A DNA stretch of 64,000 nucleotides, from the IMG/VR virus record IMGVR_UViG_3300043446_005562, positions 188,619-252,618 of that record; one strand, 5' to 3'. This document shows, piece after piece, positions 19,701-37,436 of this stretch; positions within the stretch are counted from its first letter, which is position 1, and the number at the start of each line of letters is the position of its first letter. The position numbers and the translations under genes were made by a program. Below the pieces are notes generated by a model. That model was not told the DNA's origin and searched no databases. It worked only from the letters and a program-made list of their open reading frames with translations.

Positions 19701-19887
19701 TTATAAAATCATTAAATTCTTTTTGAATCTTGTTAACTCTAAGTTCTGCCAGGATGGCGACTCCCACCCACAGAGTGCAGTTAACTTTCCAGAGATCAAT
19801 GGGTCGATCGAATACAAAGTCAGTTGTGTAACTTACGATTAGAGTAACAAGCATGAATGCGTACAAAATTTTTGAGAATGTGTTCAT
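19684..19887 (-). CDS. Small two-TM membrane protein
   Basis: Two hydrophobic segments. Confidence 0.5.
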   Translation of the reverse strand: MNTFSKILYAFMLVTLIVSYTTDFVFDRPIDLWKVNCTLWVGVAILAELRVNKIQKEFNDFINGSNK

Positions 19888-19899
19888 ATTTATACTATA

Positions 19900-20115
19900 C
19901 TATTTTAATTCTTCGTTTATCCTATTTTGAATGTCTTGCGCAATTTTAATCGCGCCAAATTTTGAAATCCAGGTACCAAGCAGAGGTCCGCCATTGAATT
20001 CTATGTACTCTATCAGATTTTGATGTTGGCAATTTTTAAGCCAATTCAGCGCGTGCACGCTAATAGTTTCCGCATAGAATTGCTCATCAGTTTCAATTAG
20101 TCGATTCTCTTCCAT
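19900..20115 (-). CDS. Hypothetical protein
   Basis: Packed ORF. Confidence 0.5.
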   Translation of the reverse strand: MEENRLIETDEQFYAETISVHALNWLKNCQHQNLIEYIEFNGGPLLGTWISKFGAIKIAQDIQNRINEELK

Positions 20116-22415: not shown

Positions 22416-22549
22416 AGTAGTTATGTTATTTTTTGCTCATCTCTTTGTAACCCTTATTGATTACTCAAAGGCCCGCGGACCCGAGACGAACAGAGCGAGG
22501 CTCTATGTTCCAATAATATTTATACTAAAATCCAAAAAAGGTTTTGGAT

Positions 22550-22626
22550 TGGCGATCCCGACAGGATTCGAACCTGTGGCCCACAGATTAGAAATCTGTT
22601 GCTCTATCCAACTGAGCTACGGGACC
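22550..22626 (-). tRNA. tRNA-Arg(TCT)
   Basis: Cloverleaf; anticodon arm ACAGA-tttctaa-TCTGT; encoded CCA. Confidence 0.95.
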
Positions 22627-22650
22627 ATTGTTTAATTAATATACTATTTG

Positions 22651-22731
22651 TACCTCGGGTGGGACTCGAACCCACAAGCATTTCGCACTCGATCTTAAGC
22701 CGAGCGTGTTTACCAATTTCACCACCGAGGC
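22651..22731 (-). tRNA. tRNA-Leu(TAA)
   Basis: CTCGG-cttaaga-TCGAG, long variable arm, GTTCGAGTC. Confidence 0.95.
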
Positions 22732-22732
22732 A

Positions 22733-22809
22733 TGGGGTGACGGAGGGGAATCGAACCCCCGACCTTCTGAACCACAATCAGACGCTCTAACCTGCTGAGC
22801 TACCGCCAC
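22733..22809 (-). tRNA. tRNA-His(GTG)
   Basis: TCTGA-ttgtggt-TCAGA; C73 plus CCA. Confidence 0.95.
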
Positions 22810-22811
22810 AG

Positions 22812-22881
22812 AGGTCAATGTTGGAATCGAACCAACTCCGTGGGATTTGCAGTCCCATTGGCCTCCACGACCGAACTGACC
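22812..22881 (-). tRNA. tRNA-Cys(GCA)
   Basis: TGGGA-ctgcaaa-TCCCA; U73; short D-loop. Confidence 0.9.
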
Positions 22882-22885
22882 TAAT

Positions 22886-22920
22886 AAAAAATGGGGCTTA
22901 AACTTGCGCTTAAGCCCCAT
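22886..22920 (-). terminator. Intrinsic terminator immediately upstream of tRNA-Cys (attenuator terminator)
   Basis: ATGGGGCTTAAGC-gcaa-GTTTAAGCCCCAT then TTTTT. Confidence 0.85.
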
Positions 22921-22944
22921 GTAAGGTTTTAGTTTTCCATCACA

Positions 22945-23016
22945 TCACGACTTAAGTCCCTCAGATCTAGATCTGTGAGTACATAAACTTAATCGATGTA
23001 ATGATAAGGTTTTCAT
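22945..23016 (-). CDS. Putative leader peptide of the Cys/His/Leu/Arg tRNA operon
   Basis: MKTLSLHRLSLCTHRSRSEGLKS; ATG 6 nt after a -10 box; 4 TTA, 2 AGA, TGT, CAT and CAC codons. Confidence 0.7.
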   Translation of the reverse strand: MKTLSLHRLSLCTHRSRSEGLKS

Positions 23017-23022
23017 GTTAAT

Positions 23023-23050
23023 AATATACTATAAAATTGCTTTTCGGTTT
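23023..23050 (-). promoter_or_regulatory. Early-type promoter AAACC-N17-TATATT
   Basis: Matches the recurring window-wide motif AAAC(C/T)-N16-18-TATAAT. Confidence 0.6.
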
Positions 23051-24259
23051 TTATTTATTATCGGACCTGCCTAATTTACGTTTCACAGCTTCTCTGGTTT
23101 TTTCCATCTTTGCTGCGTAACTTGGATTCTTCTTTTTATTAAAATTAATCTGTTGATTTAGTGAACCTGATATTTTTTGTAGGTTCCTGCCTCTAGTTTT
23201 AATTAACCAATTAGCTAATGCATTTACTCCAAGTTCTTTAAATTTGCCGTTTGCGTCTGGTGCGTTAGAATCATGCCATTCAAGTCGCTTCTTTTCGGAT
23301 ACTGCATAATTATCTTCAATTGCTTGATCTACGATTTGTTCAATTTGAGCATCCGTAAATCCTAGATTTAACATAGGCTGTCTGAAAGACCATTTTAATT
23401 TATGAGTGAGTCTCTGTTTAATTTGTTCGGGAGTGGTTGCATAGTATCTAGTATCTCTGTGATTCACAAATACTTTACATACGGCTTTAACTCGACGAAC
23501 CATCTTCATTGGCTCTTTAATCAACTGTGCCATTCTTGAGGCTTTACCCTCATCGAATCCATAGCTGTTGAATAGACCATTCGCTCTCATCATGTCCTTT
23601 TCTTCAGGCTGAACTGCTTCAACGTCGATAAAATTGTTACTAGCTAAACCTAGTGCTTTTAATCTATTGTAATTACGTTGCTGATTTTCACGAATCTCTG
23701 ACATTCTTTGAAATTCTGAGAGTATTCGTTGACTGCGATCGTATTCTTCTCCTCCGTATTTTCCCGAATAGTAGGCAAGAACTGAAACTCCATTCATTAG
23801 ATCAGAATATGCAGATACTCTTGTTGTATCAGGATCCTTCTTCTGTAGAGAAATAATATCTAACAGAATATCTTCTAGGAAATCTAGCGCCGAGTTTGCA
23901 TTAATTTGAGCTGGCTCGCTTTCAAGATCATCGTCCTCAATAATATTAACGTAATTTGTAACTTGATCCGCCAATTGTTTTACTTCAGCCTCTGTGTTAG
24001 GCATCTCGGTGTTAACTGAAGATTTTTTAATCTTCTTTAGCGAAAATACTGGAACCTTTGCAATGGTTCCGTTGCTGCCTGTAAATTTGATTTTTGCGAA
24101 CTCTCCATCAATTGATAATAATTGACCGTGACCACGATAAGTATCAACCCAATCCCCAGGTTCTAATTCTGGATTGTCCTCGTTCTTTGCAAACTCTGAG
24201 TCAGGGTCTTGTAAAAATTTATCAAGATCGAAATCTTCGAATAGTTTAACGTGTTTCAT
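23051..24259 (-). CDS. Multi-module late protein with capsid-targeting-like N-terminus
   Basis: MKHVKLFEDF; internal NYNRLKALGL. Confidence 0.65.
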   Translation of the reverse strand: MKHVKLFEDFDLDKFLQDPDSEFAKNEDNPELEPGDWVDTYRGHGQLLSIDGEFAKIKFTGSNGTIAKVPVFSLKKIKKSSVNTEMPNTEAEVKQLADQVTNYVNIIEDDDLESEPAQINANSALDFLEDILLDIISLQKKDPDTTRVSAYSDLMNGVSVLAYYSGKYGGEEYDRSQRILSEFQRMSEIRENQQRNYNRLKALGLASNNFIDVEAVQPEEKDMMRANGLFNSYGFDEGKASRMAQLIKEPMKMVRRVKAVCKVFVNHRDTRYYATTPEQIKQRLTHKLKWSFRQPMLNLGFTDAQIEQIVDQAIEDNYAVSEKKRLEWHDSNAPDANGKFKELGVNALANWLIKTRGRNLQKISGSLNQQINFNKKKNPSYAAKMEKTREAVKRKLGRSDNK

Positions 24260-26408: not shown

Positions 26409-27121
26409 TATTTCCAGTAGTTTTGGTCCTTGTAAAAATAGGATTCGTTATTGCGATTAAGCCAATTTCTAAAAACCAGGCCTATCATTTTAAAGTACCC
26501 GTATCTTTTAAACCTTCGATTATCCTGCGTAATTAAATCCGGTACGAGCTTGAATTTTTTTGGCTTGATCTTTCGACTTAGCAGCCAATCTTCGCTTTGA
26601 TGAGCGGCTTCGTCAAATCCTCCAAGTTCTAAAAATATGAGTCGCCTAACGAGTATAAAACCGCCTATTGCAAACGGTTTCGTTTTGGAAAGGTACCATG
26701 TGACTAGTCGATTAATGCTAAATATTAATTTAGCTCGAATGTCAAACTCACCACGATATTTTGGACAAGTTCCAATCATTGCCAAATTTTCATTCATTAA
26801 GCAGGTTAGCGCTCGTGAGACGACCGTTTTATCAGTAAATGTAATATCCGCATCAATGAACAGCAGATATGGTGTGGTAGCGAGGTCCGCGCCGGCATTA
26901 CGGCCAACCGCCGGTAATCCTCCCTTAACTATCTCAACTCTTAGATCAAGTTGCTTCTTTAACTTTTCAATGATGCTGAGGGTTGAGTCAACTGAGCCAG
27001 CGTCCGCAATTATTATTCTCACGCCTTCCGTACCAAGCTGTCTTTTAATATGTCGAAGAGTTCTGCCAATATAGAGCTCTTCGTTGTAGCATGGAATGAC
27101 GATTGTGAGCAGATCCTGCAT
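26408..27121 (-). CDS. Glycosyltransferase family 2
   Basis: IVIPCYNEE, DAGSVD, GRNAGA, FIDAD, GGFDE, SED. Confidence 0.9.
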   Translation of the reverse strand: MQDLLTIVIPCYNEELYIGRTLRHIKRQLGTEGVRIIIADAGSVDSTLSIIEKLKKQLDLRVEIVKGGLPAVGRNAGADLATTPYLLFIDADITFTDKTVVSRALTCLMNENLAMIGTCPKYRGEFDIRAKLIFSINRLVTWYLSKTKPFAIGGFILVRRLIFLELGGFDEAAHQSEDWLLSRKIKPKKFKLVPDLITQDNRRFKRYGYFKMIGLVFRNWLNRNNESYFYKDQNYWK

Positions 27122-27816
27122 TAGATGAATAGGGTTAATTTTTGAGAATTTAGATTAAATCCAGAAGTTTCGTATATTACGTACGAAGTATTTTCAATCC
27201 AGTCACCGGTATTTAGATAGCGAACTCCATCGATCTGTTTGTCGGCCGGCGTATGAATGTGACCGCAGATAACCGTATGACAATTTCTCTTTTTTGCTTG
27301 CCTTACCATTTCATTTTCAAAGTCGGTCATGAAAGAGATAGCCGCTTTGACATTATCCTTTAGGTATTTGGATAGGCTTGTCTTTTTATTAAACTTCTTT
27401 AGTAGTCTATCGATTACTATTGCTAAATCGTAACCGATTGAGCCAAGCATGCCTAACCAGTGCATCTTTACAATACCATCATAGCGATCACCATGACAAA
27501 ACCAGATACCGGCCTCACAAAATTCGTCAACTACCTTTATTCCACCTATCGTAACTGGTAAATATTCTCTAAGAAATTCATCGTGATTGCCAGCGATCCA
27601 GATAACCTCATGCTCCTTTGAGACCTTTAATAACTTTCTAATGAGGCGAGTGTGTTCAACCGAAAATTTCTTGTACTTTTTAAACAACCAACCGTCAATT
27701 ATATCGCCGACCAGAATCAATCGGTCGAATTCGGTATTTTTTAGTAGTGCTATTACACCCTCGGTATTACAACCTTTAGAGCCAATGTGAACGTCCGATA
27801 TTACTAGAGTTTTCAT
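27121..27816 (-). CDS. LpxH-like (UDP-2,3-diacylglucosamine hydrolase family) metallophosphoesterase
   Basis: SDVHIG, GDIIDGW, GNHD, HGD, CGHIH, YLNTGDW. Confidence 0.8.
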   Translation of the reverse strand: MKTLVISDVHIGSKGCNTEGVIALLKNTEFDRLILVGDIIDGWLFKKYKKFSVEHTRLIRKLLKVSKEHEVIWIAGNHDEFLREYLPVTIGGIKVVDEFCEAGIWFCHGDRYDGIVKMHWLGMLGSIGYDLAIVIDRLLKKFNKKTSLSKYLKDNVKAAISFMTDFENEMVRQAKKRNCHTVICGHIHTPADKQIDGVRYLNTGDWIENTSYVIYETSGFNLNSQKLTLFI

Positions 27817-27818
27817 AA

Positions 27819-28130
27819 TTAATCCTTTTCCCAGCCTTCCTCGGCATGGTCATATTCACAGCAGGGAAACTGTCGACCCTTATCGTCAACGTGAGTCCAA
27901 ACCTTGCCTTCCTTAATCCATACCCAAGGTTCATCCGATTTTCCCGGAAGTTCAGGTCTTTCTAAAGGCGGATGATAGGCATTTACGTCAGTGTGTCTGT
28001 GATTACATTCACAACCTCTTGGAACGCAATCATCACAAGAATAGTCGTTCTCTTTGCTTGAATATCCGGGCAAGTAAACCCAGGTTGCGATCTTACCGCA
28101 ATCGCATAATTCTTTACCAGCTATCAACAT
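27819..28130 (-). CDS. Cys-rich hypothetical protein
   Basis: CDCG, CDDC, GCEC, PCCE. Confidence 0.55.
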   Translation of the reverse strand: MLIAGKELCDCGKIATWVYLPGYSSKENDYSCDDCVPRGCECNHRHTDVNAYHPPLERPELPGKSDEPWVWIKEGKVWTHVDDKGRQFPCCEYDHAEEGWEKD

Positions 28131-28317
28131 CAGTTAAATCTATTTCAGTTCCAGTTAAATGACTAAAGAGACGTAATTCACTACCAATTCCATTCGGTGT
28201 ACATTTCCAAGTAAGTAGCCCAACCTCACCATATATAGCCTTAATATGACTAATCCATTTATCAAACTTCTTCTGCTGCTTGTCATTTAATTCTATAATT
28301 ATTTGTTTATTTGCCAT
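28114..28317 (-). CDS. Hypothetical protein
   Basis: Packed ORF; TPNGIG...DLTDVDSW. Confidence 0.55.
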   Translation of the reverse strand: MANKQIIIELNDKQQKKFDKWISHIKAIYGEVGLLTWKCTPNGIGSELRLFSHLTGTEIDLTDVDSW

Positions 28318-28334
28318 TGCATGTATTTAAAAAG

Positions 28335-28441
28335 TAGTCGGTCCGGGACTCGAACCCGTATGCTGTTGCCAGCGGGGACTTGTACAATCCCTGTGTCTGT
28401 CCATCGGCAGTTGTACACCTGCTCGCTTTCACCACCCGACT
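28335..28441 (-). ncRNA. Aberrant tRNA-like RNA with enlarged D-arm hairpin
   Basis: Acceptor AGTCGG/CCGACT, T-arm CGGG-ttcgagt-CCCG, variable arm GCTG-gcaa-CAGC, anticodon-like GGGAT-tgtacaa-GTCCC, extra GCAG-gtgtacaa-CTGC. Confidence 0.7.
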
Positions 28442-28447
28442 GAAAAA

Positions 28448-28524
28448 TGGAAGAGGGGGGAATCCAACCCACCGTCACGGCCGTTAGGGCTTGCTCTCAT
28501 GTAGTGTCACTGAGCTACTCTTCC
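28448..28524 (-). ncRNA. Degenerate tRNA-like element
   Basis: Acceptor GGAAGAG/CTCTTCC, D-stem GCTC/GAGC with 15-nt loop, irregular anticodon arm, T-loop TTGGATT. Confidence 0.55.
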
Positions 28525-28528
28525 CTTG

Positions 28529-28606
28529 TACCCTCTGAGAGACTCGAACTCTCACCCGAAGACTAGATCCTAAGTCTAGCGCGTCTACCAATTCCGCCAA
28601 GAGGGC
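28529..28606 (-). tRNA. tRNA-Leu(TAG)
   Basis: CTAGA-cttagga-TCTAG; GGCGGAATTGGTAGACGC D-arm. Confidence 0.95.
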
Positions 28607-28617
28607 ATTCTATGAAA

Positions 28618-29043
28618 TTAATCGATTAGTGTTTCCATTTTAAAAGTTACAATCCACCTAGCGCAATCTTGAGGTAGTCGATTAATGTGTTTGTAATTAT
28701 TGATGTATCCCATCATGTTTGCAGACCCAATCGCATTTGCTGAATGTACCATCACTTTACAAACTGGGGCTCCATTCATCCATTGCTCTACTAACCACTT
28801 TGTACAATCCATTCCTGTTTTTTCAGTAATGTTGTCGTAGTTAAGAGTGTAGTTATGATACACGTTGGTGTGCCATTCTTTCATGGCTGAGTCACCTAAG
28901 TCGTGATCTAAGCTAATAAGAGCAATGTTCTCTAATCCAATTTCAGTTACCTTAGCTACAAACTCTTCGTAGTTACGTACTACTGTCCAATCTTCTTTAT
29001 TGATTGGAGTTCTTACGTCGTCTAGGTAAATATTGTATTTCAT
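28618..29043 (-). CDS. Cyclic-phosphate-processing receiver-domain protein
   Basis: IYLDDVRTP, ISLDHDLG, TGMDCTKWL and VHSAN motifs; adjacent to an RNA ligase. Confidence 0.75.
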   Translation of the reverse strand: MKYNIYLDDVRTPINKEDWTVVRNYEEFVAKVTEIGLENIALISLDHDLGDSAMKEWHTNVYHNYTLNYDNITEKTGMDCTKWLVEQWMNGAPVCKVMVHSANAIGSANMMGYINNYKHINRLPQDCARWIVTFKMETLID

Positions 29044-29079
29044 GTAGCTATTATACTAAGTTAAATCAGCTAGGGTTTA

Positions 29080-30159
29080 CTAGTCTCCGCCTTTTAGCAA
29101 AAATTTATTTGAGATTACCTTAAACGAAATTGATCTAACCATATTTCGGATTACCAAACCTTCACGCTCCGTACTTTCACACAGGGCAGATTTGCCCTCG
29201 GCGAACTGCAACAGCTCTTCAATTGTATTGGGCAGTAGAAAATGATTATGAAGCATGGGTACCGTTTCAAGGCCCAATTCATTGATCGTTTTTTCCAATT
29301 GGGCTTTAATGTAGTACTGATGTTCGTCGATATCGAAGATATTAAAGAACTTCAGAGTTTGACCCTTCAGCCTGTATGGATTGCCCTGAATTCCTTCACC
29401 GATAATCTCTCCTTGAAAGGAAACATTTTTACCAAGACTACGCATCTTTGTCTCAAGATCCAATTCTCTGGCAACCTTCCACATTGTGTTGTCTTCAGTC
29501 TCAAGCAGCTCAAGATTTCTAGAACAGATGCCAAATTCGCCATCCTTTACGTAGGCTGTGAAAGAGGATCCATCTAGCTTTTCAGTAACATAGAAGGAGG
29601 TTTTTGTGTAGCCCTCATACTCGTTGGTCAAGTTCTGCACTCGCTCTTCATCTGTTTTTGGAATGAACGATGGAAAAAGACCCTTGGCCACACCAGCTAA
29701 TGAAGCCGGTACCGGCGGTTCATACTTAATGATTCCCAAGTGTTTACTTACATCCAATCCTTCTTCAATCACCAGCGCATCATCGTAAGGCCCCAGTTGT
29801 AGCTGCTCTCCCCATGGCTGTTCACTGACTCCAACGACCATTTCCTCAGCACAGTTTAGAGTTTCAAGCGGTAGGACTAGACCTTGCGATACTTGGCCTC
29901 TGAGCTTAATCGTCTTTAATCGAAAGCCTTCAGAGCCGTCCGCTAATTTTCGATAGGAACTCTTACGTAAGAACTCAAACTCCTCCTTTATTGGCAGGAA
30001 CGAGTCAATTTCGCAATAGATGCACAGATCTCCCGGTTTGTACTCGCCCTTTTTGCAAACGACGTTCCAGTTATTGATCTGTACGACTTCAATCACGTCA
30101 GCTCCTTCGATCGGTCTAACGTCTCTGACTCTTTGAATACTTGCTAATTTTCTTTCCAT
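29080..30159 (-). CDS. RNA ligase, DRB0094 family
   Basis: MERKLASIQ OB-like N-terminus, FPSFIPKTDEERVQN, TEKLDGSS, QGEIIG, EREGLV, SFKVISNKFL. Confidence 0.9.
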   Translation of the reverse strand: MERKLASIQRVRDVRPIEGADVIEVVQINNWNVVCKKGEYKPGDLCIYCEIDSFLPIKEEFEFLRKSSYRKLADGSEGFRLKTIKLRGQVSQGLVLPLETLNCAEEMVVGVSEQPWGEQLQLGPYDDALVIEEGLDVSKHLGIIKYEPPVPASLAGVAKGLFPSFIPKTDEERVQNLTNEYEGYTKTSFYVTEKLDGSSFTAYVKDGEFGICSRNLELLETEDNTMWKVARELDLETKMRSLGKNVSFQGEIIGEGIQGNPYRLKGQTLKFFNIFDIDEHQYYIKAQLEKTINELGLETVPMLHNHFLLPNTIEELLQFAEGKSALCESTEREGLVIRNMVRSISFKVISNKFLLKGGD

Positions 30160-30161
30160 TT

Positions 30162-30419
30162 TTATTCTTTGTATATTTCGGCAAGTTTGCGTTCTATTTC
30201 ATAACACTTTTCGGATGGAACTCCATCTGCGTAAAATCTAAATGAATTGAACTTGCTCTTGATTTGACTGAACTTAAAATCCGGTAATTTGCTTAGGCTC
30301 TCAAACTCCGCGTCTAAATACTCAATTACTTCCGGTTTATCTAGTGCAAGCCCATAGTGGCCCTTTTTTAAAAAGGCACCCCACTTTTTGTTAAACTCAT
30401 CAGAGGTTGTAGGTTTCAT
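30162..30419 (-). CDS. Hypothetical protein
   Basis: QIKSKF..FRFY motif. Confidence 0.55.
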   Translation of the reverse strand: MKPTTSDEFNKKWGAFLKKGHYGLALDKPEVIEYLDAEFESLSKLPDFKFSQIKSKFNSFRFYADGVPSEKCYEIERKLAEIYKE

Positions 30420-30445
30420 ATATCGTTTTTAATAATTTAATTGTA

Positions 30446-30706
30446 CTAAAAAGGCAGTGGTCGGGTTTCCCAATCCGAGTAAGAGGTCCATTCGACAAGA
30501 TCGTCAACTTGACCCTCTTCGATCACATGAGCGACCATAATCTCCTGCTTCTCATTCTTTCCGACTGCGACCATTCTGCAGCCTTCACATAGAACAGGCA
30601 TGTAAGTATTTGGTTCAAGGGACTCAGCTATTTTCTGAACGTCTATTTCCGGTTCAAAATCTTCGCCCCACATTTCGGTTGCGCATCGATTACAAAAGTC
30701 TGCCAT
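30446..30706 (-). CDS. Small zinc-binding hypothetical protein
   Basis: FCNRC...LCEGC. Confidence 0.55.
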   Translation of the reverse strand: MADFCNRCATEMWGEDFEPEIDVQKIAESLEPNTYMPVLCEGCRMVAVGKNEKQEIMVAHVIEEGQVDDLVEWTSYSDWETRPLPF

Positions 30707-30707
30707 A

Positions 30708-31211
30708 TTATTGTCTGTTTAAAATTTTAAGAGCGTAGCCGTTGATCATAGGTCTGCCTGTGTTATAACAGCCCAGCACCAGACCCCAATCGCCGTACTT
30801 TTTATAGAGGTTTGAGAGCAGCTTCATTGAGATCTTTACATTTAATTCCAAGTCGTTTAATAGCTGCTTTGAAGTAATTTGTTTGCCCCAAGTTGCGGTT
30901 GCGGTCGGCACCTGAATCTGCATTGCACCGTAGGCATGAGCTGAAGACACAAGTTTTGGATTGTATCCCCAGTCGAATGGGCCGTGATAGCCGCTTTCAG
31001 TTTCAGCAACGCCCATCGCAATGTTGAAGGGTACGTTGTACTGCTTTGAGTAGGTCTGCAGATAATCGTACAGCCTAATACAAGGTGGCGCTTTTTTTAG
31101 TGAAACTTTGGAGAGATCTAGGGTTCTATCCCCGTGCTTAGCTGTTTCGTAAGACCAGGCTGCGCCAAATAATAACAGCACTCCAAAGATTAGAGTTGAT
31201 CTTAGTGACAT
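30708..31211 (-). CDS. Lytic transglycosylase (SLT domain) with signal/anchor
   Basis: AETESG, AYGAMQI, YNTG. Confidence 0.85.
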   Translation of the reverse strand: MSLRSTLIFGVLLLFGAAWSYETAKHGDRTLDLSKVSLKKAPPCIRLYDYLQTYSKQYNVPFNIAMGVAETESGYHGPFDWGYNPKLVSSAHAYGAMQIQVPTATATWGKQITSKQLLNDLELNVKISMKLLSNLYKKYGDWGLVLGCYNTGRPMINGYALKILNRQ

Positions 31212-31534
31212 TACTTCGCGATTTGGTCATACTTCCTAGAAGCATAAAGGTTAAAAATCATTAGTCCTACCGAATCTTGATACACGGTGTAGGTACCGTC
31301 CGCTCTATCGATTACAAGAAGTTCATTGCGCTCGTTGATCGCAACTGAGGTTGTGGATAGAGGTTTTGTATTCTTAAGTGGGGATTTCTTTGCGTGACTC
31401 ATCATTACCCAATAGTAATAGCCAATAAAGAATCCAGTTATCATTGCGACCGCAACAATAAGCAGATTACCAAGTTTCTTTGCAAAGACGTTTAAACGAG
31501 CCAATGCATTCGTGATCATGAGTTTCTTGTCCAT
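31211..31534 (-). CDS. Membrane protein
   Basis: Single TM helix; coupled to the SLT gene. Confidence 0.55.
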   Translation of the reverse strand: MDKKLMITNALARLNVFAKKLGNLLIVAVAMITGFFIGYYYWVMMSHAKKSPLKNTKPLSTTSVAINERNELLVIDRADGTYTVYQDSVGLMIFNLYASRKYDQIAK

Positions 31535-31590
31535 AACTTTGTTTTATAGGTTTAAAACTATTATACTAAAAAATGGGGCGAGCGGTCTTT

Positions 31591-31971
31591 TTAGTATTCT
31601 TTTGGACTTTCGATGTCCTTTAAGTCTGGAAATTTAGTGTACAGTTTATGATAGATTCTGTCAAATCTGCGATCCTGATCCCGTTGAAATCGATCGCCCG
31701 CTTCAAATACATTGCGCTGAATGTTTGATTGTTCTTCTCGAATGGATCTAAATTCCCATTCAAGATTCTTTCGAATCTCTTCAGTGTTCTCTTCCAATCT
31801 TCGATAAAGATCTTCCCGAACTGAATGAAGTGTGTTAGCAAGACCTGTTAGATCATTACTTAATTGATTGTTGATTGCTTGTGCCTTACGTAACCCCAAC
31901 CCAATCCATCCAAGATAGATTACGGCCAAAGTGCCTAGTACGCTCAACACGACAGTTGAAATTATTGTCAT
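31591..31971 (-). CDS. N-terminal TM plus coiled-coil protein
   Basis: Hydrophobic N-terminus, heptad-rich body; bracketed by a 10-bp inverted repeat. Confidence 0.6.
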   Translation of the reverse strand: MTIISTVVLSVLGTLAVIYLGWIGLGLRKAQAINNQLSNDLTGLANTLHSVREDLYRRLEENTEEIRKNLEWEFRSIREEQSNIQRNVFEAGDRFQRDQDRRFDRIYHKLYTKFPDLKDIESPKEY

Positions 31972-32033
31972 ATATTTAGGGTGTTTTTAGTGCTCGCCCC
32001 AAATATTTTACTCTATCGTAAACTTAGGTTTTG

Positions 32034-32888
32034 TTAAAAGCCGTTGGTTGAAGTGTTATAAAAAACTTTACCAGTCACGTCGGTCGTCTTGGTGATGGTC
32101 GGCGTTGAATAGTTAAAGGTTAATACATCACCGCCTGTGTTCTCTCCGAATTGAATTCTAATTGGATAATAAGTGCCGGACGTTAAAGCAACTGAGCCGG
32201 ATCTTTCAACCGTTCCATGGAGTCCTCCATTATTCACAGTTGCATTGCCTGTGGTAAAGCCGCTAATTGCATTACTTCCAACCCAAACATAGGAAGCATC
32301 ATCGCTTGATGTGTAAAAGGTATAGGTTTCAGTCGTAGTTGGTTTAAAATAACCCAACCATTGACAACTAAATACTTCTCCATCATTTGAGGATGGTTCG
32401 GAAATCACTGTAGTTTGAACTGATGTTGCCGGGTTAGCACCGAATGTCGTTGGCGTAGCGGTCGCAAAAAAGCTTACGTTATCACTAAAATATCCAGAAT
32501 AGGTTGTTTTGTAGAGACCCGCTGCATACGGTACAAATGTTGTAAAATAATTATTGGTATTCAACCAATCATACGCCAATTGAGCTGTTGCAAAGGGTCC
32601 ACTTGCGCCAGCAACAGCATTTGCAATACTTAAAAAACTTGCATCTGTCAAGCTACTCGATCTCCAAAAACCAACGGTTCCGTTGTTCAGGCCGTTTGGT
32701 GTGGGCTGATTTGCTGCAGCAACGTCCTTTGCGATAATATAGCCCAGTGATTCGTCTGGACCCATCCACCAGGTAAGACCGGTCGCGCCAAAGCCGGCGC
32801 TTGGGGTACCGTATGCCAGGTTTCCAAGCTGGGTTGTTCCGCCGATTGCGGCGCCAGTATTACGAGTGAAGGGTCGTGATGTTGCCAT
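32034..32888 (-). CDS. PA14-domain (carbohydrate-binding) putative virion protein
   Basis: FSCQWLGYFKP...YTFYTSSDDAS...NNGGLHG...YYPIRIQFGE; late-promoter-like AATAAATA at 32911-32918. Confidence 0.8.
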   Translation of the reverse strand: MATSRPFTRNTGAAIGGTTQLGNLAYGTPSAGFGATGLTWWMGPDESLGYIIAKDVAAANQPTPNGLNNGTVGFWRSSSLTDASFLSIANAVAGASGPFATAQLAYDWLNTNNYFTTFVPYAAGLYKTTYSGYFSDNVSFFATATPTTFGANPATSVQTTVISEPSSNDGEVFSCQWLGYFKPTTTETYTFYTSSDDASYVWVGSNAISGFTTGNATVNNGGLHGTVERSGSVALTSGTYYPIRIQFGENTGGDVLTFNYSTPTITKTTDVTGKVFYNTSTNGF

Positions 32889-32913
32889 CCAGTAACTAGA
32901 TCTTTCTAGTTAT

Positions 32914-34005
32914 TTATTCTTCTTGATTCCAGAAAGGTTTTTGATAATCTGGTCGAATCTGCTTCCAGATCTGCTGACTGGGATCCCGACCGTTCAGCAA
33001 GCAGAATAGGGTGCTCCAAGCGGTTTGCGGAACATTTTCTTGAATCCACAAGGCCTCGTCCTTTCTGGTCTTGAAACCCTGTTCAGATAATTGATTTAGA
33101 TAATTTTGCGCAGACCTCATTCGCATGACATGTGCAACTTTTAGGGCAGCCTCCCACTGTCTAACCCATGCATCAAATTCATCGGGCACCATCTCTAAAA
33201 ATTGATCAAGTTCTTCGCCCCGGCTCAGGTGCTCCCAAATATCGACATTAGAAAAATTGGTCAAGAGCCGGTGCAATCGAACGTATTCTTCGAATTTAAT
33301 CTTCATTCTAAAATTTCCGGGCTGGAATCTTAGAACAAAACCTTCAGCCTTTCTAGTATTCATGGCCTTTAGGCTTTCATAGAGTTCAGGACTAAAATTA
33401 AAATGTTGCTCAGTTTTTACCAGATCAGATTTGCTAATTCCGTTTGACCTAAAAAAAGCGCACGCGGTTGTCCAGTGCAATTCAGTACCCTCAGAGATGG
33501 CGCTCAGAAAAACCACCCTGGGCTTGGAACCGTAATCAACAACTATACGATTCTTGGGATAGATGATTTCGCACAAGTAGGTTACTCGACGCTCAAATTG
33601 ACGTAGTCCAAAATATTTCTCTTTTAGAATTTTTAAACCCTCAACTGCCTGATCCGAATGAAATGAACCTCGAGTGGCCATGTGCCAGGCGTCAGCATAA
33701 TAGAATAGAATTCCCAATGAGCCGTCCATTTTTTGCTGCACATAAACGTAATCACCTTTGACTGGAATTTGACCAGTCTGCGCAGCCTCCTCGTAATTAA
33801 AGAATTTATTGAAACCCCTAGCCACAATCTCGCCTGAATCATCCATGATGAGACCTCGACACTGTAGAGTCACTTCATCCCATGCCGAATCGTATTGGCA
33901 TTTTCTAGAGTAATTGTAAATTGTCAACGGTAATTTGTTATGCCGATTGGCAACGACCAATCCACGGTTGACGTAATCCTTTAAGATAGTTTGAGTTAGG
34001 GTCAT
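32914..34005 (-). CDS. RNA ligase 1 (T4 RnlA-like)
   Basis: CRGLI, FNKFFNY, KMDGSLG, ATRGSF, NRIVVDY, EGFV, KIKFEEY. Confidence 0.9.
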   Translation of the reverse strand: MTLTQTILKDYVNRGLVVANRHNKLPLTIYNYSRKCQYDSAWDEVTLQCRGLIMDDSGEIVARGFNKFFNYEEAAQTGQIPVKGDYVYVQQKMDGSLGILFYYADAWHMATRGSFHSDQAVEGLKILKEKYFGLRQFERRVTYLCEIIYPKNRIVVDYGSKPRVVFLSAISEGTELHWTTACAFFRSNGISKSDLVKTEQHFNFSPELYESLKAMNTRKAEGFVLRFQPGNFRMKIKFEEYVRLHRLLTNFSNVDIWEHLSRGEELDQFLEMVPDEFDAWVRQWEAALKVAHVMRMRSAQNYLNQLSEQGFKTRKDEALWIQENVPQTAWSTLFCLLNGRDPSQQIWKQIRPDYQKPFWNQEE

Positions 34006-34410
34006 TTATAATTTAATTTCAAAACGAGCTCTCATCTGCTCTACTTTTTCAGCCGGCACTCCATGAGAATTAATGCCACCGTGCCTATTTTCAACAATGA
34101 TTGAGAAAACTCGATAGTTCCATTCCTTTGCTAAATCGTAATAGGCTTGCATTTCCCACTCTTGAGTAAATGTATTCGAGACCACAATCACGGAATTTTG
34201 ACCGGTTGTGTGATTTAGTATCATGGCGGTTTCCACATCACCATAACACCACTGATGAGCCTCCTTTAATTTAGAGGCATCGAATCGATATTCGCTATTC
34301 TCATCCAAGAAAAATCTGTCTGTTTCAAAATGAGAACCTCCAAGCTCTTTAGCTAGTGTTGATTTGCCCGCACCCGGCAAACCTCGTAAAAGAAATAGTG
34401 TCTTTGTCAT
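34006..34410 (-). CDS. P-loop kinase (polynucleotide-kinase-like, AAA_33)
   Basis: LRGLPGAGKST, VSNTF, HGVP...MRARFE; abuts Rnl1. Confidence 0.8.
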   Translation of the reverse strand: MTKTLFLLRGLPGAGKSTLAKELGGSHFETDRFFLDENSEYRFDASKLKEAHQWCYGDVETAMILNHTTGQNSVIVVSNTFTQEWEMQAYYDLAKEWNYRVFSIIVENRHGGINSHGVPAEKVEQMRARFEIKL

Positions 34411-34441
34411 GCTATTTTAGTTAATGATATTATACTAAAAG

Positions 34442-34523
34442 TGGGAGTAGGTGGACTCGAACCACCGAACTCAGAAGAGGAGGGATTTACAGTCCCTTGC
34501 AATTGCCGCTATGCGATACTCCC
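34442..34523 (-). tRNA. tRNA-Tyr(GTA)
   Basis: AGGGA-ctgtaaa-TCCCT; long variable arm. Confidence 0.95.
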
Positions 34524-34663
34524 AAAATAAGGAAAGGGGAAGATGGTTGTGTGGACGACCCCTTTTACGATTGGCTTTACTCTGCTAATGATCTGCCAAC
34601 TCCGATGCTGCCAGTCGACCATTAGTCTCAAACTATTGACAGCTCATTCCCCAATCAACCTTG

Positions 34664-34738
34664 TCGGGGTGGCAGGATTCGAACCTACGACCTCCTGCTC
34701 CCAAAGCAGGCGCGATAACCGGACTACGCTACACCCCG
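34664..34738 (-). tRNA. tRNA-Pro(TGG)
   Basis: CCTGC-tttggga-GCAGG. Confidence 0.95.
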
Positions 34739-34820
34739 AAAATCAATACGCTTTCGCCCCCTGTATGGCGTATTACTGATGCTTAAGGTCGGCCTTAACC
34801 GTTAAGGGAGCCACCAGTTG

Positions 34821-34893
34821 AGCGGATGGCGAGAATCGAACTCGCATCTCCAGCTTGGAAGGCTGGAGTAATAAGCCATTATACGACATCCGC
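34821..34893 (-). tRNA. tRNA-Gly(TCC)
   Basis: CCAGC-cttccaa-GCTGG. Confidence 0.95.
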
Positions 34894-34900
34894 TTATTTG

Positions 34901-34973
34901 AGCGGGAGACCGGGTTCGAACCGGCGACCTCAACCTTGGCAAGGTTGCGCTCTACCAACTGAGCTACTCCCGC
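34901..34973 (-). tRNA. tRNA-Gly(GCC)
   Basis: CAACC-ttgccaa-GGTTG. Confidence 0.95.
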
Positions 34974-35160
34974 AATTGGGTAGGATCAGACGTGTTCTGC
35001 CTACTAGGCAGGTCTGCCTACCGAGACCTCGTCGTTAACTTTCGTCAGAGCGTACCGAGACACCATTTGTTTTTCGACTTGAGGTAGTCACGGCCGCCTC
35101 TGGTCCTCTCAAGTCTATTTCGTATCGTGGCAAGATGCGGCTCGACCCTGATACGCTGTG

Positions 35161-35233
35161 AGCCTCCTGCCGGGATCGAACCAGCGACCTACTGATTACA
35201 AATCAGTTGCTCTACCAGCTGAGCTAAGGAGGC
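35161..35233 (-). tRNA. tRNA-Thr(TGT)
   Basis: ACTGA-tttgtaa-TCAGT. Confidence 0.95.
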
Positions 35234-35316
35234 AAGATGAACCGTCACAGTGGTTCAGTCTGGTCATTTTCTTCTTCAGTCATCGGTAAACCGCGACCTT
35301 CTGACGGTGACATCCA

Positions 35317-35393
35317 TGGTGGACCGTGAGAGACTCGAACTCTCGACCCCCTGCGTGCAAGGCAGGTGCTCTAGCCAACTGAGCTAACAGCCC
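35317..35393 (-). tRNA. tRNA-Ala(TGC)
   Basis: CCTGC-cttgcac-GCAGG; G3:U70; CCA. Confidence 0.95.
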
Positions 35394-35399
35394 ATTTTG

Positions 35400-35471
35400 T
35401 AGCCCGTACGAGAATCGAACTCGTCTCTCATCCGTGAAAGGGATGCGTCCTAACCGATAGACTAACGGGCC
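35400..35471 (-). tRNA. tRNA-Glu(TTC)
   Basis: CATCC-ctttcac-GGATG. Confidence 0.95.
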
Positions 35472-35593
35472 AAATAAAAACATAATACTACTTTAATAGC
35501 GCTTACCCAATTTTACAACAGAGCGCGTTACCTTGCTAGACCGTTATTGGGCAACGACTTCTAACAATCCTACCTACCCATATTATGTTTTTG

Positions 35594-35665
35594 CGGTCCC
35601 ACCGGGAATCGAACCCGGCACTTTGCCGTGACAGGGCAATATTATAGCCGATTAACTATGAGACC
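35594..35665 (-). tRNA. tRNA-Asp(GTC)
   Basis: TTGCC-ctgtcac-GGCAA. Confidence 0.95.
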
Positions 35666-35864
35666 TTTTGCTCCTTATAAATCCTTCCCGTGCACAGAAC
35701 AAGAAACTGGGGAGACGTTGTTTCTACTTTTATGAAAGGCTTGGGTACCCTCTCCCACCGTTTCGCAGGTTGAAGCGTCCATCTCCACGCCGTCCCTGTG
35801 GAACTACAGTGGCTGGTTGTTGCGGCATGCTGCGCTGTGATGGAACATTCGCACAAGCATTGAC

Positions 35865-35939
35865 TGGTTGCGGGTGCTGGAATCGAACCAGCGATCTTTG
35901 GGTTATGAGCCCAACGAGTTACCATTTCTCCGACCCGCG
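35865..35939 (-). tRNA. Initiator tRNA-fMet(CAT)
   Basis: C1:A72 mismatch, three G:C pairs in the anticodon stem, CCA. Confidence 0.9.
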
Positions 35940-35944
35940 ATGTG

Positions 35945-36015
35945 TTGTCCCGCAAGGATTCGAACCTCAATTCTCTGGACCAAAACCAGATGTGCTGCCG
36001 TTACACCACAGGACA
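35945..36015 (-). tRNA. tRNA-Gln(TTG)
   Basis: TCTGG-ttttggt-CCAGA. Confidence 0.95.
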
Positions 36016-36027
36016 ATTTACTATCTC

Positions 36028-36043
36028 CAATACGTCAAAGAAC
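36028..36043 (-). promoter_or_regulatory. boxA-like antitermination element
   Basis: GTTCTTTGACGTATTG downstream of an internal TATAAT (about 36065-36070). Confidence 0.55.
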
Positions 36044-36086
36044 CTAATTCTCTTTGTATAGAATATTATACTATATTCCAGAGATC

Positions 36087-36160
36087 TGGCACGAGTGGAG
36101 AGATTCGAACTCCCATCAACGGTTTTGGAGACCGGTATGCTACCATTGCACCACACACGT
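36087..36160 (-). tRNA. tRNA-Trp(CCA)
   Basis: CGGT-ctccaaa-ACCG; CCA end. Confidence 0.9.
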
Positions 36161-36164
36161 ATTT

Positions 36165-36241
36165 TGGTTGGAATAGTAGGATTTGAACCTACGACCTCAT
36201 GAGTATCAGTCATGCGCTCTAACCAACTGAGCTATATTCCA
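36165..36241 (-). tRNA. tRNA-Ile(GAT)
   Basis: CATGA-ctgatac-TCATG; CCA end. Confidence 0.9.
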
Positions 36242-36244
36242 ATT

Positions 36245-36320
36245 TGGTGGTGCGGGGCAGGATCGAACTGCCGACACCAGGATTTTCAGTCCTGTGCTCT
36301 ACCGTCTGAGCTACCGCACC
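36245..36320 (-). tRNA. tRNA-Phe(GAA)
   Basis: CAGGA-ctgaaaa-TCCTG; CCA end. Confidence 0.95.
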
Positions 36321-36324
36321 GGGT

Positions 36325-36360
36325 AAAACAAAAAACCTCGAATTTTTTAGGTTCGAGGTT
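36325..36360 (-). terminator. Intrinsic terminator immediately upstream of tRNA-Phe (attenuator terminator)
   Basis: AACCTCGAA-cctaaaaaa-TTCGAGGTT then TTTTGTTTT. Confidence 0.8.
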
Positions 36361-36384
36361 CAGTGTTTCGTAGTTAATATTTCC

Positions 36385-36516
36385 TTAACTTAATCCGCTT
36401 GAACCTCGCAATGCCCCAAAATCTTTAATCGCTTCCGTTGCATTCACAGTAATTGTGCCTGCCGGATACTGATTCCAGTTTTGAGAAATTTTTGATGTGT
36501 TCGCGTAGTTTTGCAC
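36385..36516 (-). CDS. Putative leader peptide of the 13-tRNA operon
   Basis: GTG start after an A-rich leader; MQNYANTSKISQNWNQYPAGTITVNATEAIKDFGALRGSSGLS; contains the antiterminator strand CGAGGTTCA. Confidence 0.7.
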   Translation of the reverse strand: MQNYANTSKISQNWNQYPAGTITVNATEAIKDFGALRGSSGLS

Positions 36517-36537: not shown

Positions 36538-36578
36538 TATTTATAAAGCTATTATACCAACTTTTCGGAAAAAGGTTC
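36538..36578 (-). promoter_or_regulatory. Tandem early-type (GAACC-N17-TATAAT) and late (TATAAATA) promoters of the tRNA operon
   Basis: TATAAT at 36551-36556 with GAACC at 36574-36578; TATAAATA at 36538-36545. Confidence 0.65.
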
Positions 36579-37436
36579 TTAGTGTTGAATAATTTTCTTG
36601 GAGGTTCCGTCATCATACAGATAAATCATGATTTCATCTTTGCGGATATATTGAACCGGCCTGCCTAACATATCAACCACACCAATTAATTTGGGTTCAC
36701 GTTTAGTAAAAGTTTTAATTCCGCTTGTAGTGCAAGTTTCAATTGTAATACGTGTGAAGAAGAATGTATCTTGGTCCAAGCATTTATTATACCATTGAGT
36801 TGCAATCAAGTAATGACCATCATGAGGGAATTTGTATTTGATAATGCGAGCATCATTACCCGGTCCTTTCTGCCAAACCAGATCGCTATCATTAAAATCG
36901 TAATACATGTACAGCTGATCATCACTCATAGAATCCCAGTCGTGCTGATTTAGAGAATCTAGCATAGGTCCATTCCAAATATAAGAATACCACTGCCAAC
37001 AAGTATCGCCTTTCTTCCAAGGACCCAGAGTCATTTCACCAACCATACTATCATTACAGGTTCCGGTAGTACTCTTTAAATTATAGACAAACTTAGAGTT
37101 GGGAAAATAAATCAATTCAATAGGACGATAAATCAGAGTATCGCATCCTTTACAACGGTTTTTCACTACGACACGCAAGTAATACTTACCCTTTTTGTTG
37201 AATTGAACTTCGCAAATACCCCTATACGAATAGACAGTATCTAATTTTTTGGTTTGAAGATCAATTACTGTAAACATGTAATCGACACAAGTATCATCCA
37301 ATACTTGACCGCTTAAATACCATTTGTAAAGGTTACGCTGATTCCATTGTTGAAGTTTTAACGTGCTCCAATCACATTTTGCAGAGGCAGTAGCTGATGC
37401 AACGAAAAGCAGAACTGCTAATAGTAGTTTTTTCAC
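36579..37436 (-). CDS. Secreted protein with tandem PKD/Ig-like modules and T9SS-type C-terminal sorting domain
   Basis: Signal peptide; KLIGVVDMLGRPV...IYLYDDGTSKKII tail; internal repeat F.K.G.Y...N.C..CDT. Confidence 0.7.
   Translation of the reverse strand: MKKLLLAVLLFVASATASAKCDWSTLKLQQWNQRNLYKWYLSGQVLDDTCVDYMFTVIDLQTKKLDTVYSYRGICEVQFNKKGKYYLRVVVKNRCKGCDTLIYRPIELIYFPNSKFVYNLKSTTGTCNDSMVGEMTLGPWKKGDTCWQWYSYIWNGPMLDSLNQHDWDSMSDDQLYMYYDFNDSDLVWQKGPGNDARIIKYKFPHDGHYLIATQWYNKCLDQDTFFFTRITIETCTTSGIKTFTKREPKLIGVVDMLGRPVQYIRKDEIMIYLYDDGTSKKIIQH

Follow-up and report, generated by a model that had tools for sequence, protein, structure and literature searches.

Predicted leader-peptide attenuators upstream of the tRNA operons of a large phage

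We found that each of the two tRNA operons in a 64,000-nt stretch of a large phage genome (IMG/VR record IMGVR_UViG_3300043446_005562, positions 188,619 to 252,618; hereafter the window) is preceded by a small leader ORF and a predicted intrinsic terminator, and that the leader uses the amino acids carried by the tRNAs of its own operon. The most likely reading is that these elements are ribosome-dependent transcription attenuators, so that the phage probably makes the tRNAs only when decoding runs short. We consider this reading likely, although it is inferred from anatomy and comparison among phages and not from experimental or expression evidence. We found no earlier description of such a device for tRNA genes in full-text literature searches.

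A first-pass annotation of the sequence had proposed a leader-peptide attenuator upstream of the tRNA-Cys/His/Leu(TAA)/Arg(TCT) operon. The elements it described were confirmed, and its interpretation was supported by comparative evidence. It had also suggested a test, namely whether leader codons co-vary with the downstream tRNAs in related phages. The outcome of this test was positive at the level of amino acids within the clade, between the two leaders of the window, and in other phages. The annotation missed a third helix in leader 1, in which codons 5-8 pair with the sequence over and just after the stop codon, giving a trp-like set of alternative pairings.

Anatomy of the two leaders

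The elements of the two operons, all on the minus strand, are as follows.

23046..23051 (-), -35-like box AAAACC of the leader 1 promoter (inferred), whose first base overlaps the stop codon of the upstream 402-aa gene
23023..23028 (-), -10 hexamer TATATT, part of the conserved block TAGTATATTATTA(A/G)CATGAAAAC
22945..23016 (-), leader ORF 1, 23 codons plus TGA, with codons 4-18 encoding LSLHRLSLCTHRSRS
22994..23003 (-), segment 1, the 5' strand of helix P1 (codons 5-8, CATTACATCG), candidate anti-antiterminator
22962..22975 (-), internal hairpin within the ORF (CAGAT-CTAG-ATCTG, codons 14-19)
22937..22956 (-), segment 2, the antiterminator 5' strand, with the core CTTAAGTC (22956-22949, codons 21-23) continuing through the stop codon into GTGATGTGATGG, which is also the 3' strand of P1 (22947-22938)
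22908..22926 (-), segment 3, CCTTACAT plus the terminator 5' arm, which pairs either with segment 2 (antiterminator) or with segment 4 (terminator)
22885..22920 (-), intrinsic terminator with a 13-bp stem (22920-22908 with 22903-22891), GCAA loop and T-run
22550..22881 (-), tRNA-Cys(GCA), His(GTG), Leu(TAA) and Arg(TCT)
22637..22647 (-), second exact copy of ATAGTATATTA, between tRNA-Leu and tRNA-Arg, a possible internal promoter
36551..36558 (-), promoter-like GGTATAAT of leader 2, followed by TAGCTTTA, which resembles the Bacteroidota -7 motif
36385..36516 (-), leader ORF 2, 43 codons with a GTG start
36401..36408 (-), antiterminator segment of leader 2, CGAGGTTC (codons 37-39), a perfect complement of the terminator 5' arm GAACCTCG
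36325..36361 (-), terminator 2 (GAACCTCGAA, 9-nt loop, TTCGAGGTTT, T-run), ending 4 nt before tRNA-Phe
34441..36320 (-), array 2, tRNA-Phe, Ile, Trp, Gln, Met, Asp, Glu, Ala, Thr, Gly, Gly, Pro and Tyr

ARAGORN and Rfam both called the four tRNAs of operon 1 as tRNA-Cys(GCA) at 22811-22881, His(GTG) at 22733-22809, Leu(TAA) at 22650-22731 and Arg(TCT) at 22550-22626. In the promoter-like site, AAACC (23050-23046) is separated by a 17-nt spacer from TATATT (23028-23023), and the ATG begins 7 nt after the -10 hexamer, so the mRNA would be leaderless. The -35-like box is invariant and the -10 block identical in the first five relatives aligned, whereas the sixth variant (L149) differs from the block at a few positions. 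A similar A(A/G)AACC-N16/17-TATAAT precedes leader 2, where the block TATAATAGCTTTATAAATAAC is identical in four variants. The 11-mer ATAGTATATTA occurs exactly twice in the window, both times in operon 1; its second copy might let tRNA-Arg partly escape the attenuator, but it is absent in the sequence L002, where tRNA-Leu and tRNA-Arg are 4 nt apart. Only 4 of 72 phage genes have a Shine-Dalgarno-like motif, and their upstream regions are A-rich. The lack of a ribosome-binding site on the leaders is therefore normal for this phage.

Leader ORF 1 translates to MKTLSLHRLSLCTHRSRSEGLKS. Nine of codons 4-17 (TTA x4, CAT, CAC, TGT and AGA x2) are read by the four tRNAs of the operon, while such codons make up 7.9% of codons in the phage's own genes; a binomial estimate gives about 2e-7 for 9 of 14. 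In codons 4-18, 14 of 15 residues are Cys, His, Leu, Arg or Ser, and among 59,561 stop-free 15-mers in all six frames of the window exactly one reaches 14 of 15. The terminator was the best hit of a scan of 6 kb, and its T-run ends 4 nt before tRNA-Cys. No promoter-sized space lies between either terminator and its first tRNA. The segment 2 core pairs with GGCTTAAG (22916-22909) over 8 bp, including one G-U.

Leader 2 uses the complementary amino acids. Residues 2-35 contain 14 of the 15 amino acids outside Cys/His/Leu/Arg/Ser, and only 2 Ser from that set. The comparison of leader 1 with leader 2 gives a Fisher p of 5e-8, although the Fisher and permutation figures given here ignore relatedness. 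The pairing of the leader 2 antiterminator segment with the terminator 5' arm was equalled by 4 of 2000 shuffles, but it is invariant in four variants and so offers no covariation.

Conservation, folding and amino-acid composition

Leader 1 is conserved in six sequence variants from related jumbo phages, with a 23-codon ORF and the same start and stop in each, while the other two frames of the window's leader carry 2 and 3 stops. Residues 8-18 change yet stay within Leu/Ser/His/Arg/Cys. Relatives add Ser(TGA or GGA), Leu(TAG), Ser(GCT) and Arg(ACG) to the same operon, and those whose operon also carries Ser, Leu(TAG) and Arg(ACG) tRNAs have 15 of 15 such residues in codons 4-18. Leader 2 is conserved as a 42-43-codon ORF in three further leader 2 sequences (L124, L126 and L128/L129). 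In one contig (3300042549_009448), leader 1 and operon 1 are absent together, and the leader 2 ORF is deleted together with a truncated tRNA-Phe.

The full leader 1 folds with z = -5.7 against shuffles, and its helices show compensatory changes, with three such pairs in the terminator, two in the antiterminator, and one pair of P1 (15-78) found as A-U, U-A and C-G. The antiterminator core helix is 95.6% paired, and 92% of cells in P1 are paired across five homologues. These covariation counts rest on essentially one clade split, and the sequences as a whole come from only a few independent lineages. The internal hairpin is also predicted in all homologues, but its stem sequence differs between clades (AAGAC/GTCTT, GAGAT/GTCTC) and its register shifts by 1 nt; a pause site is possible.

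In 15 representative leaders of about 10 sequence families, the nascent RNA was predicted to fold into the antiterminator, and this helix was lost when a simulated ribosome A-site lay in the last 6-12 codons. For leader 1, the boundary (codon 18) coincides with the end of the Leu/Ser/His/Arg/Cys run. Complementarity between the ORF and the terminator 5' arm beat at least 96% of shuffles in 13 of the 15 leaders and always lay in the last third of the ORF. In most families, however, the antiterminator segment ends 13-26 nt before the stop codon, so that a ribosome parked on the stop would mask it only partly, by footprint or by steric exclusion.

The same design recurs in at least seven further leader families. 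The arrays of L124 and L126 carry exactly the 15 amino acids found in residues 2-35 of their leader 2, and the leader of another family, L157, has all 20 amino acids in 43 residues before an array serving all 20. Across 13 leader/array pairs, 149 of 155 array amino acids occur in the pair's own leader, while amino acids absent from the array appear in 47 of 105 cases; shuffling arrays among leaders reached the observed match once in 20,000 trials. One unrelated 634-kb phage (LR745206.1) has four paralogous leaders, each enriched in the amino acids of its own array, and the true assignment of these leaders to their arrays ranks 1 of 24.

The match is at the level of amino acids, and a strict codon-for-anticodon covariation does not hold. 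The window's leader 1 uses CGA, AGT and TCT although its operon has no Arg(ACG) or Ser tRNA, L002 uses CTA without Leu(TAG) in its operon, and the window's leader 2 has 5 Asn, 2 Lys and 1 Val although its array lacks those tRNAs. Peptide diversity taken as a statistic was significant only for the all-amino-acid leaders (p = 0.003-0.024) and not for the leaders L140, L161 or L159.

Proposed mechanism and alternative readings

In the mechanism that we consider most likely, transcription of leader 1 starts at or next to the ATG, and a ribosome begins translating the leader while RNA polymerase moves on. If every codon is decoded promptly, the ribosome reaches the last codons and the stop, where it covers segment 2; the terminator 5' arm then pairs with its 3' arm, and transcription ends 4 nt before tRNA-Cys. 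If the ribosome instead stalls anywhere in codons 2 to about 17 for lack of a charged tRNA, segment 2 stays free, helix P1 is also prevented, and segment 2 captures the terminator 5' arm as it emerges, so that polymerase reads through into the tRNA genes. With no ribosome at all, segment 1 can pair with segment 2, which would favor termination as in the trp leader, but this step is the least certain: P1 is part of the minimum-energy fold of the full leader, whereas equilibrium folding of the nascent RNA without a ribosome already favors the antiterminator (paired fraction 0.4-1.0). Leader 2 would work the same way for the array that serves the other amino acids. The net effect would be a demand-driven negative feedback, in which a shortage of any tRNA species that the operon supplies turns the operon on and sufficiency turns it off. 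Anticodon-nuclease attack, the trigger suggested by the first-pass annotation, has as its only support the RNA-ligase, kinase and phosphoesterase genes lying between the two operons.

Other readings of these elements appear unlikely. The attenuator could be ribosome-dependent yet report only whether ribosomes are translating at all, for example after host shut-off or a ribosome shortage, with no regulatory meaning in the codon content. This would fit the several leaders that carry many different amino acids once each, the unremarkable diversity of L140, L161 and L159, and the fact that masking the antiterminator needs only the arrival of the ribosome at the ORF end. A generic sensor, however, gives no reason for the restriction of leader 1 to Leu/Ser/His/Arg/Cys, for the avoidance of Leu, Arg, His and Cys by leader 2, or for the agreement between leaders and their own arrays in the 13 pairs and in LR745206.1. 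The same agreement at the amino-acid level is not explained by an untranslated RNA, which makes it doubtful that the leader is a structured element that binds a factor or an uncharged tRNA (T-box-like), or that serves in precursor processing or stability, with an incidental ORF. In favor of such an element, the RNA structure is strong and conserved (z = -5.7 and -6.2) with compensatory changes, and a 30-nt stretch of leader 2 is invariant in four variants, including third codon positions. Yet an ORF starting at a conserved ATG or GTG and ending after the antiterminator segment is present in all 22 leaders examined, while the other two frames carry 59 and 46 stops, and no Rfam family, T-box included, matched these elements at E <= 1 in a cmscan of 20000-42000. 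Their only hit was a sub-threshold match to BjrC68 over 22884-22970, covering the terminator and the 3' part of the leader, and the scan otherwise listed tRNAs and a few sub-threshold chance hits.

Least likely, in our view, is an independent micro-gene encoding a functional peptide, with the tRNAs made by unregulated leak-through or from other promoters. Promoter, ORF and terminator do form a complete transcription unit, the N-terminus MKTL.LH / MRTLTHT is conserved across families, and a promoter-like repeat lies inside the operon. Beyond residue 7, however, only the composition of the peptide is conserved, the terminator abuts the first tRNA in every case, the complement of the terminator 5' arm inside the ORF co-varies with that arm, and the leader and its tRNAs are lost together.

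A broader reading, which we regard as somewhat more likely than not, is that huge phages, probably of Bacteroidota hosts, carry a modular sampler of decoding capacity, in which each tRNA array is preceded by a mini-ORF containing about one codon for every amino acid the array serves. A shortage of any one of those tRNAs, whether from host tRNA-cleaving defenses, phage-induced loss of host tRNAs or codon-usage mismatch, would then switch on the whole array, and the leader would be rewritten to match when an array is split or specialized during evolution. This would be the first attenuator found on tRNA genes and the first sensor of up to all 20 amino acids in one leader. How phages regulate their own tRNA genes is essentially unknown, and why large phages carry near-complete tRNA sets is still debated; a feedback device of this kind would show that phage tRNAs are supplied on demand and would link them mechanistically to tRNA depletion during infection. 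Leader composition predicts which tRNAs belong to one transcription unit, and the modules could be used as compact, natural reporters of tRNA availability.

Relation to known systems and distribution of the module

The closest known systems are the leader-peptide attenuators of enterobacterial amino-acid operons (trpL, hisL, leuL, thrL, pheL and the multivalent ilvL/ivbL). These share with the present elements a short leader ORF enriched in the codons that matter, an intrinsic terminator directly before the regulated genes, an antiterminator that shares a strand with the terminator, probably a choice of hairpin decided by ribosome position and, in the leader 1 clade, perhaps a further helix that would act as anti-antiterminator. 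The ilv leaders already sense three amino acids at once. Here, the regulated genes are tRNAs and not biosynthetic enzymes, so that the loop would close on decoding capacity itself, the element is in phages, the mRNA is leaderless or lacks a Shine-Dalgarno sequence, and the valency is extreme (5, 15 or all 20 amino acids, mostly with one to a few codons each rather than runs). No sequence similarity to any of these leaders was detected in the Rfam search. The pheM leader of the E. coli pheST operon (phenylalanyl-tRNA synthetase) probably also controls a component of the translation apparatus in response to charged tRNA, but it controls a synthetase and senses a single amino acid. T-box riboswitches make a tRNA-responsive choice between terminator and antiterminator upstream of genes of the aminoacylation pathway, but they bind uncharged tRNA directly and need no translation, whereas the conserved feature here is an ORF whose amino-acid content tracks the array. 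The tRNA clusters of phages T4 and T5 and other tRNA-rich phages are likewise arrays, sometimes interspersed with small ORFs, with RNA ligase and kinase genes linked to tRNA repair. We know of no attenuator described for them, and our literature searches found none.

DNA searches of 50,697 deposited phage genomes with positions 22540-23060 of the window and 1150-2350 of L157 matched only the tRNAs and not these leaders; at near-identity, the 1-kb region of the window found only a tRNA-Arg match. A query with the LR745206.1 leader found only that record and LR756502.1. The exact promoter/start pattern of leader 1 returned, among viral contigs, only the known clade plus L048, a chance match to the start of an ordinary gene. 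The gene neighboring leader 2 (36579-37436) is not syntenic with tRNAs in other phages, and a small ORF starting ATGAAAAC just before terminator 2 in L124 is not conserved; the window has ACG there. The device is not universal, since L111, a more distant phage, has no terminator or leader before tRNA-Phe. The upstream tRNA cluster of the sequence L142 and the solitary tRNA-Leu(TAG) and tRNA-Ser(TGA) of the window also have no leader.

The leader upstream of the tRNA-Cys operon

The window belongs to a 252-kb uncultured phage contig, IMGVR_UViG_3300043446_005562, with 41% G+C, and carries 19 tRNA genes, all on the minus strand. Read 5' to 3' on the minus strand, the region of interest consists of the following elements:

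the stop codon of a 402-aa gene
AAAACC, a 17-nt spacer, and then TATATT
6 nt further on, an ATG that opens a 23-codon ORF (23016..22945)
24 nt after the TGA of this ORF, a 13-bp hairpin with a GCAA loop and a T-run (22920..22885)
4 nt later, tRNA-Cys, His, Leu(TAA) and Arg(TCT)

The first-pass annotation, which had proposed a leader-peptide attenuator here, described this layout accurately in every detail, including the 8-bp complementarity between CTTAAGTC and GGCTTAAG. Nine of codons 4-17 are read by the four tRNAs, whereas such codons make up 7.9% of codons in the phage's own genes. In codons 4-18, 14 of 15 residues are Cys, His, Leu, Arg or Ser, for which the binomial probability from the phage's proteome composition is 8e-9. 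Exactly one of 59,561 stop-free 15-mers in six frames of the window scores as high, and the leader's codons 4-18 score 14 of 15.

To evaluate the conservation of this module, we retrieved loci through the neighbouring gene and through the 5' half of tRNA-Cys. These searches gave six distinct versions of the module, namely that of the window and those of five retrieved loci (L002, L003, L010, L012 and L149). The block TAGTATATTATTA(A/G)CATGAAAAC is identical in five of the six, with L149 differing at a few positions. The ORF always has 23 codons and ends in TGA. After MK(T/N)L(S/T)LH the peptide sequence changes freely, but residues 4-18 stay within Leu/Ser/His/Arg/Cys, with 15 of 15 such residues in L003, L010 and L012 and 14 in the window, L002 and L149. 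In the relatives with 15 of 15 the operon is Cys, Ser, His, Leu, Leu, Ser, Arg, Arg, a complete tRNA set for exactly those five amino acids. In L002, two genes have been inserted between the 402-aa gene and the module, yet the module stays attached to the tRNAs. This pattern of conservation is that of a regulatory leader. A natural deletion variant, contig 3300042549_009448 (loci L073 2190-2310 and L011 5360-5430), lacks leader 1 together with its whole operon; in the same contig the ORF of the second leader discussed below is gone but its promoter and terminator remain, and tRNA-Phe is truncated.

The full leader folds far better than shuffled sequences (z = -5.7), and the fold contains the terminator plus a long-range helix, P1, between codons 5-8 and the ten bases over and just after the stop codon. 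When truncated before the terminator 3' arm, the RNA instead pairs segment 2 (the last codons and the following bases) with the terminator 5' arm and the bases before it. On a gap-free alignment, the terminator has three compensatory pairs, the antiterminator core has two (C-G/U-A and U-A/C-G) with 95.6% of cells paired, and P1 has one pair present as A-U, U-A and C-G. Because these counts rest on one main clade split, they are supportive rather than conclusive. The 3' arm of the terminator is invariant; the change in the 5' arm is absorbed there by G-U wobble but matched by Watson-Crick changes in segment 2, which argues that the antiterminator pairing is itself under selection.

We also modelled the effect of ribosome position by forcing 26 nt around a simulated P/A site to be unpaired and folding the nascent RNA. 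In all homologues, the terminator 5' arm is held in the antiterminator while the A-site is at codons 2-17 and is released when the A-site is at codon 18 or later, although this boundary depends on the assumed footprint by about one codon. The run of Leu/Ser/His/Arg/Cys codons spans codons 4-18, the stretch where a stall would give readthrough.

Other sequences around this operon were also noted. The -10-like motif (A)TAGTATA(T/A)(T/A)T recurs between tRNA-Leu and tRNA-Arg (22637-22647, minus strand) and again just after the weak hairpin that follows tRNA-Arg (22517-22527, minus strand), and these may be an internal promoter and the promoter of the next gene, respectively. Similar motifs precede the ATG at 19887-19903 and lie inside the big array at 36064-36074. 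A G+C-rich stretch (GAGCCTCGCTCTGTTCGTCTCGGGTCCGCGGGCC..., 22440-22510, minus strand) lies between the operon end and the 258-aa zinc-ribbon gene; it stands out in an A/T-rich intergenic region but gave no Rfam hit.

A second leader upstream of the 13-tRNA array

A second candidate attenuator lies in the same window, upstream of the 13-tRNA array (tRNA-Phe to tRNA-Tyr, 36320..34441), and comprises the following elements:

a promoter-like GGTATAAT
a 43-codon ORF (36516..36385)
a small A/T hairpin
a terminator that ends 4 nt before tRNA-Phe

Codons 37-39 of the ORF (CGAGGTTC) are a perfect complement of the terminator 5' arm. Four variants keep a 42-43-codon ORF, in which residues 2-35 contain 14 or 15 of the 15 amino acids outside the leader-1 set, no Leu, Arg, His or Cys, and only one or two Ser. 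In two related loci, L124 and L126, the array serves exactly those 15 amino acids. The two leaders of the window differ in composition with Fisher p = 5e-8. The twenty amino acids are thus divided between two leaders in the same way as the tRNAs are divided between two operons.

Within leader 2 (36425-36495, minus strand), a 30-nt stretch (CAAAACTGGAATCAGTATCCGGCAGGCACA) and a later 17-nt stretch are invariant at every codon position in four variants, while the flanks vary. These stretches form the base of a predicted long hairpin inside the ORF, which could be a pause site or a timing device. Relatives also carry suppressor-type tRNAs (L124 5194-5271; L126 626-698; L072 1775-1847; L074 605-677), with anticodon TTA (reads TAA) inside the array that follows leader 2 and TCA (called SeC, reads TGA). 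As leader 2 ends in TAA and leader 1 in TGA, such tRNAs could in principle also be sensed at the leaders' stop codons, and they may also indicate stop-codon recoding.

Related leaders in other phages

The tRNA-Cys anchor brought in loci from other phages. A small ORF, an internal complement of the terminator 5' arm, a terminator, and then the first tRNA of an array are found in L157 (ORF 1193-1324); L146 (6265-6423, minus strand); L142, L136 and L139; L138, L156, L163 and L137; L140, L144, L150 and L152; and L148, L159 and L161. Their N-termini resemble that of leader 1, so the family appears homologous. The L157 leader has all 20 amino acids in 43 residues and precedes an array serving all 20, and the L146 leader has 20 before an array of 19. 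Over 13 leader/array pairs, 149 of 155 array amino acids occur in the pair's own leader, while amino acids absent from the array occur in 47 of 105 cases; random re-pairing equals the observed fit once in 20,000 trials. In 13 of 15 representative leaders, the complementarity between ORF and terminator beats at least 96% of shuffles and lies in the last third of the ORF.

The clearest case is an unrelated 634-kb phage, LR745206.1, which has four paralogous modules. The true assignment of its leaders to arrays is the best of 24 by a wide margin.

Table. Leader composition and array content of the four paralogous modules of LR745206.1.
Module; leader is rich in; tRNAs in the array it precedes
A; His, Lys, Phe, Trp, Ser; His, Phe, Trp, Lys, Arg, Ser
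B; Tyr, Glu, Ile, Gly; Glu, Tyr, Ile, Gly, Met
D; Asn, Leu, Thr, Met, Val, Ile, Arg; Asn, Arg, Leu, Val, Ile, Thr, Met
E; a Pro/Gln/Asp core; Pro, Asp, Gln

Directly after the terminators of L140 (about 3745-3820; also L144, L150, L152, L135 and L148) and of LR745206.1 (about 365190-365260) are tRNA-shaped sequences that ARAGORN does not call, one with an Ala-like TGC anticodon loop and one with a Tyr-like GTA loop. The true first gene of some arrays is therefore unannotated. A phage-encoded tmRNA with tag peptide AEELSSFTFEDAMAFVGADYAVAA lies near the tRNA array of L146 (8355-8756, minus strand).

Proposed mechanism and genomic context

We used a combination of sequence comparison and RNA folding to gain insight into these leaders, and their anatomy, conservation, covariation and match to the arrays are best explained by a trp-type attenuator whose output is the tRNA operon itself. 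In this inferred mechanism, a ribosome completing the leader would mask the antiterminator and transcription would stop, whereas stalling at any represented codon would leave the antiterminator free and give readthrough. Translation of the leader, termination, coupling, and the direction and trigger of the response are inferences from sequence. A generic translation sensor, an untranslated RNA element and an independent micro-gene were considered as alternatives, but each fails to explain either the match between leader and array at the amino-acid level or the co-varying complement of the terminator arm. Although the mechanism class is classical, its target, its valency and its modular co-evolution with tRNA arrays are new: Rfam has no matching family, and full-text literature searches, which did not cover all journals and so cannot exclude prior work, found no description of leader-peptide attenuation of tRNA genes in phages or bacteria.

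Only 4 of 72 phage genes in the window have a Shine-Dalgarno-like motif, and the 20 nt upstream of starts are about 50% A and about 10% G, a pattern typical of Bacteroidota and their phages. Several related leaders are preceded by TAnnTTTG, which is probably the Bacteroidota promoter motif, and, by a helicase protein, the nearest deposited phages are an uncultured huge phage and the Prevotella Lak megaphages. A Bacteroidota host is therefore likely, and leaders without ribosome-binding sites are normal for it.

A set of RNA-repair-type genes lies between the two operons (27121-34410, minus strand):

27121-27816, a metallophosphoesterase
29080-30159, an Rnl2-like ligase with a PHA02142 OB domain
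32914-34005, a T4 Rnl1-like RNA ligase
34006-34410, an AAA_33 kinase

This gene set is associated with tRNA repair, and it fits, but does not prove, a link to tRNA damage. The relative L124 also has a CCA-adding-type PolyA_pol gene. Finally, a tRNA-like sequence lies directly after tRNA-Leu(TAG) (28448-28524, minus strand); the Rfam tRNA model scores it 25.8 bits, below the 29-bit threshold, and ARAGORN does not call it, but it may be a degenerate or atypical tRNA.
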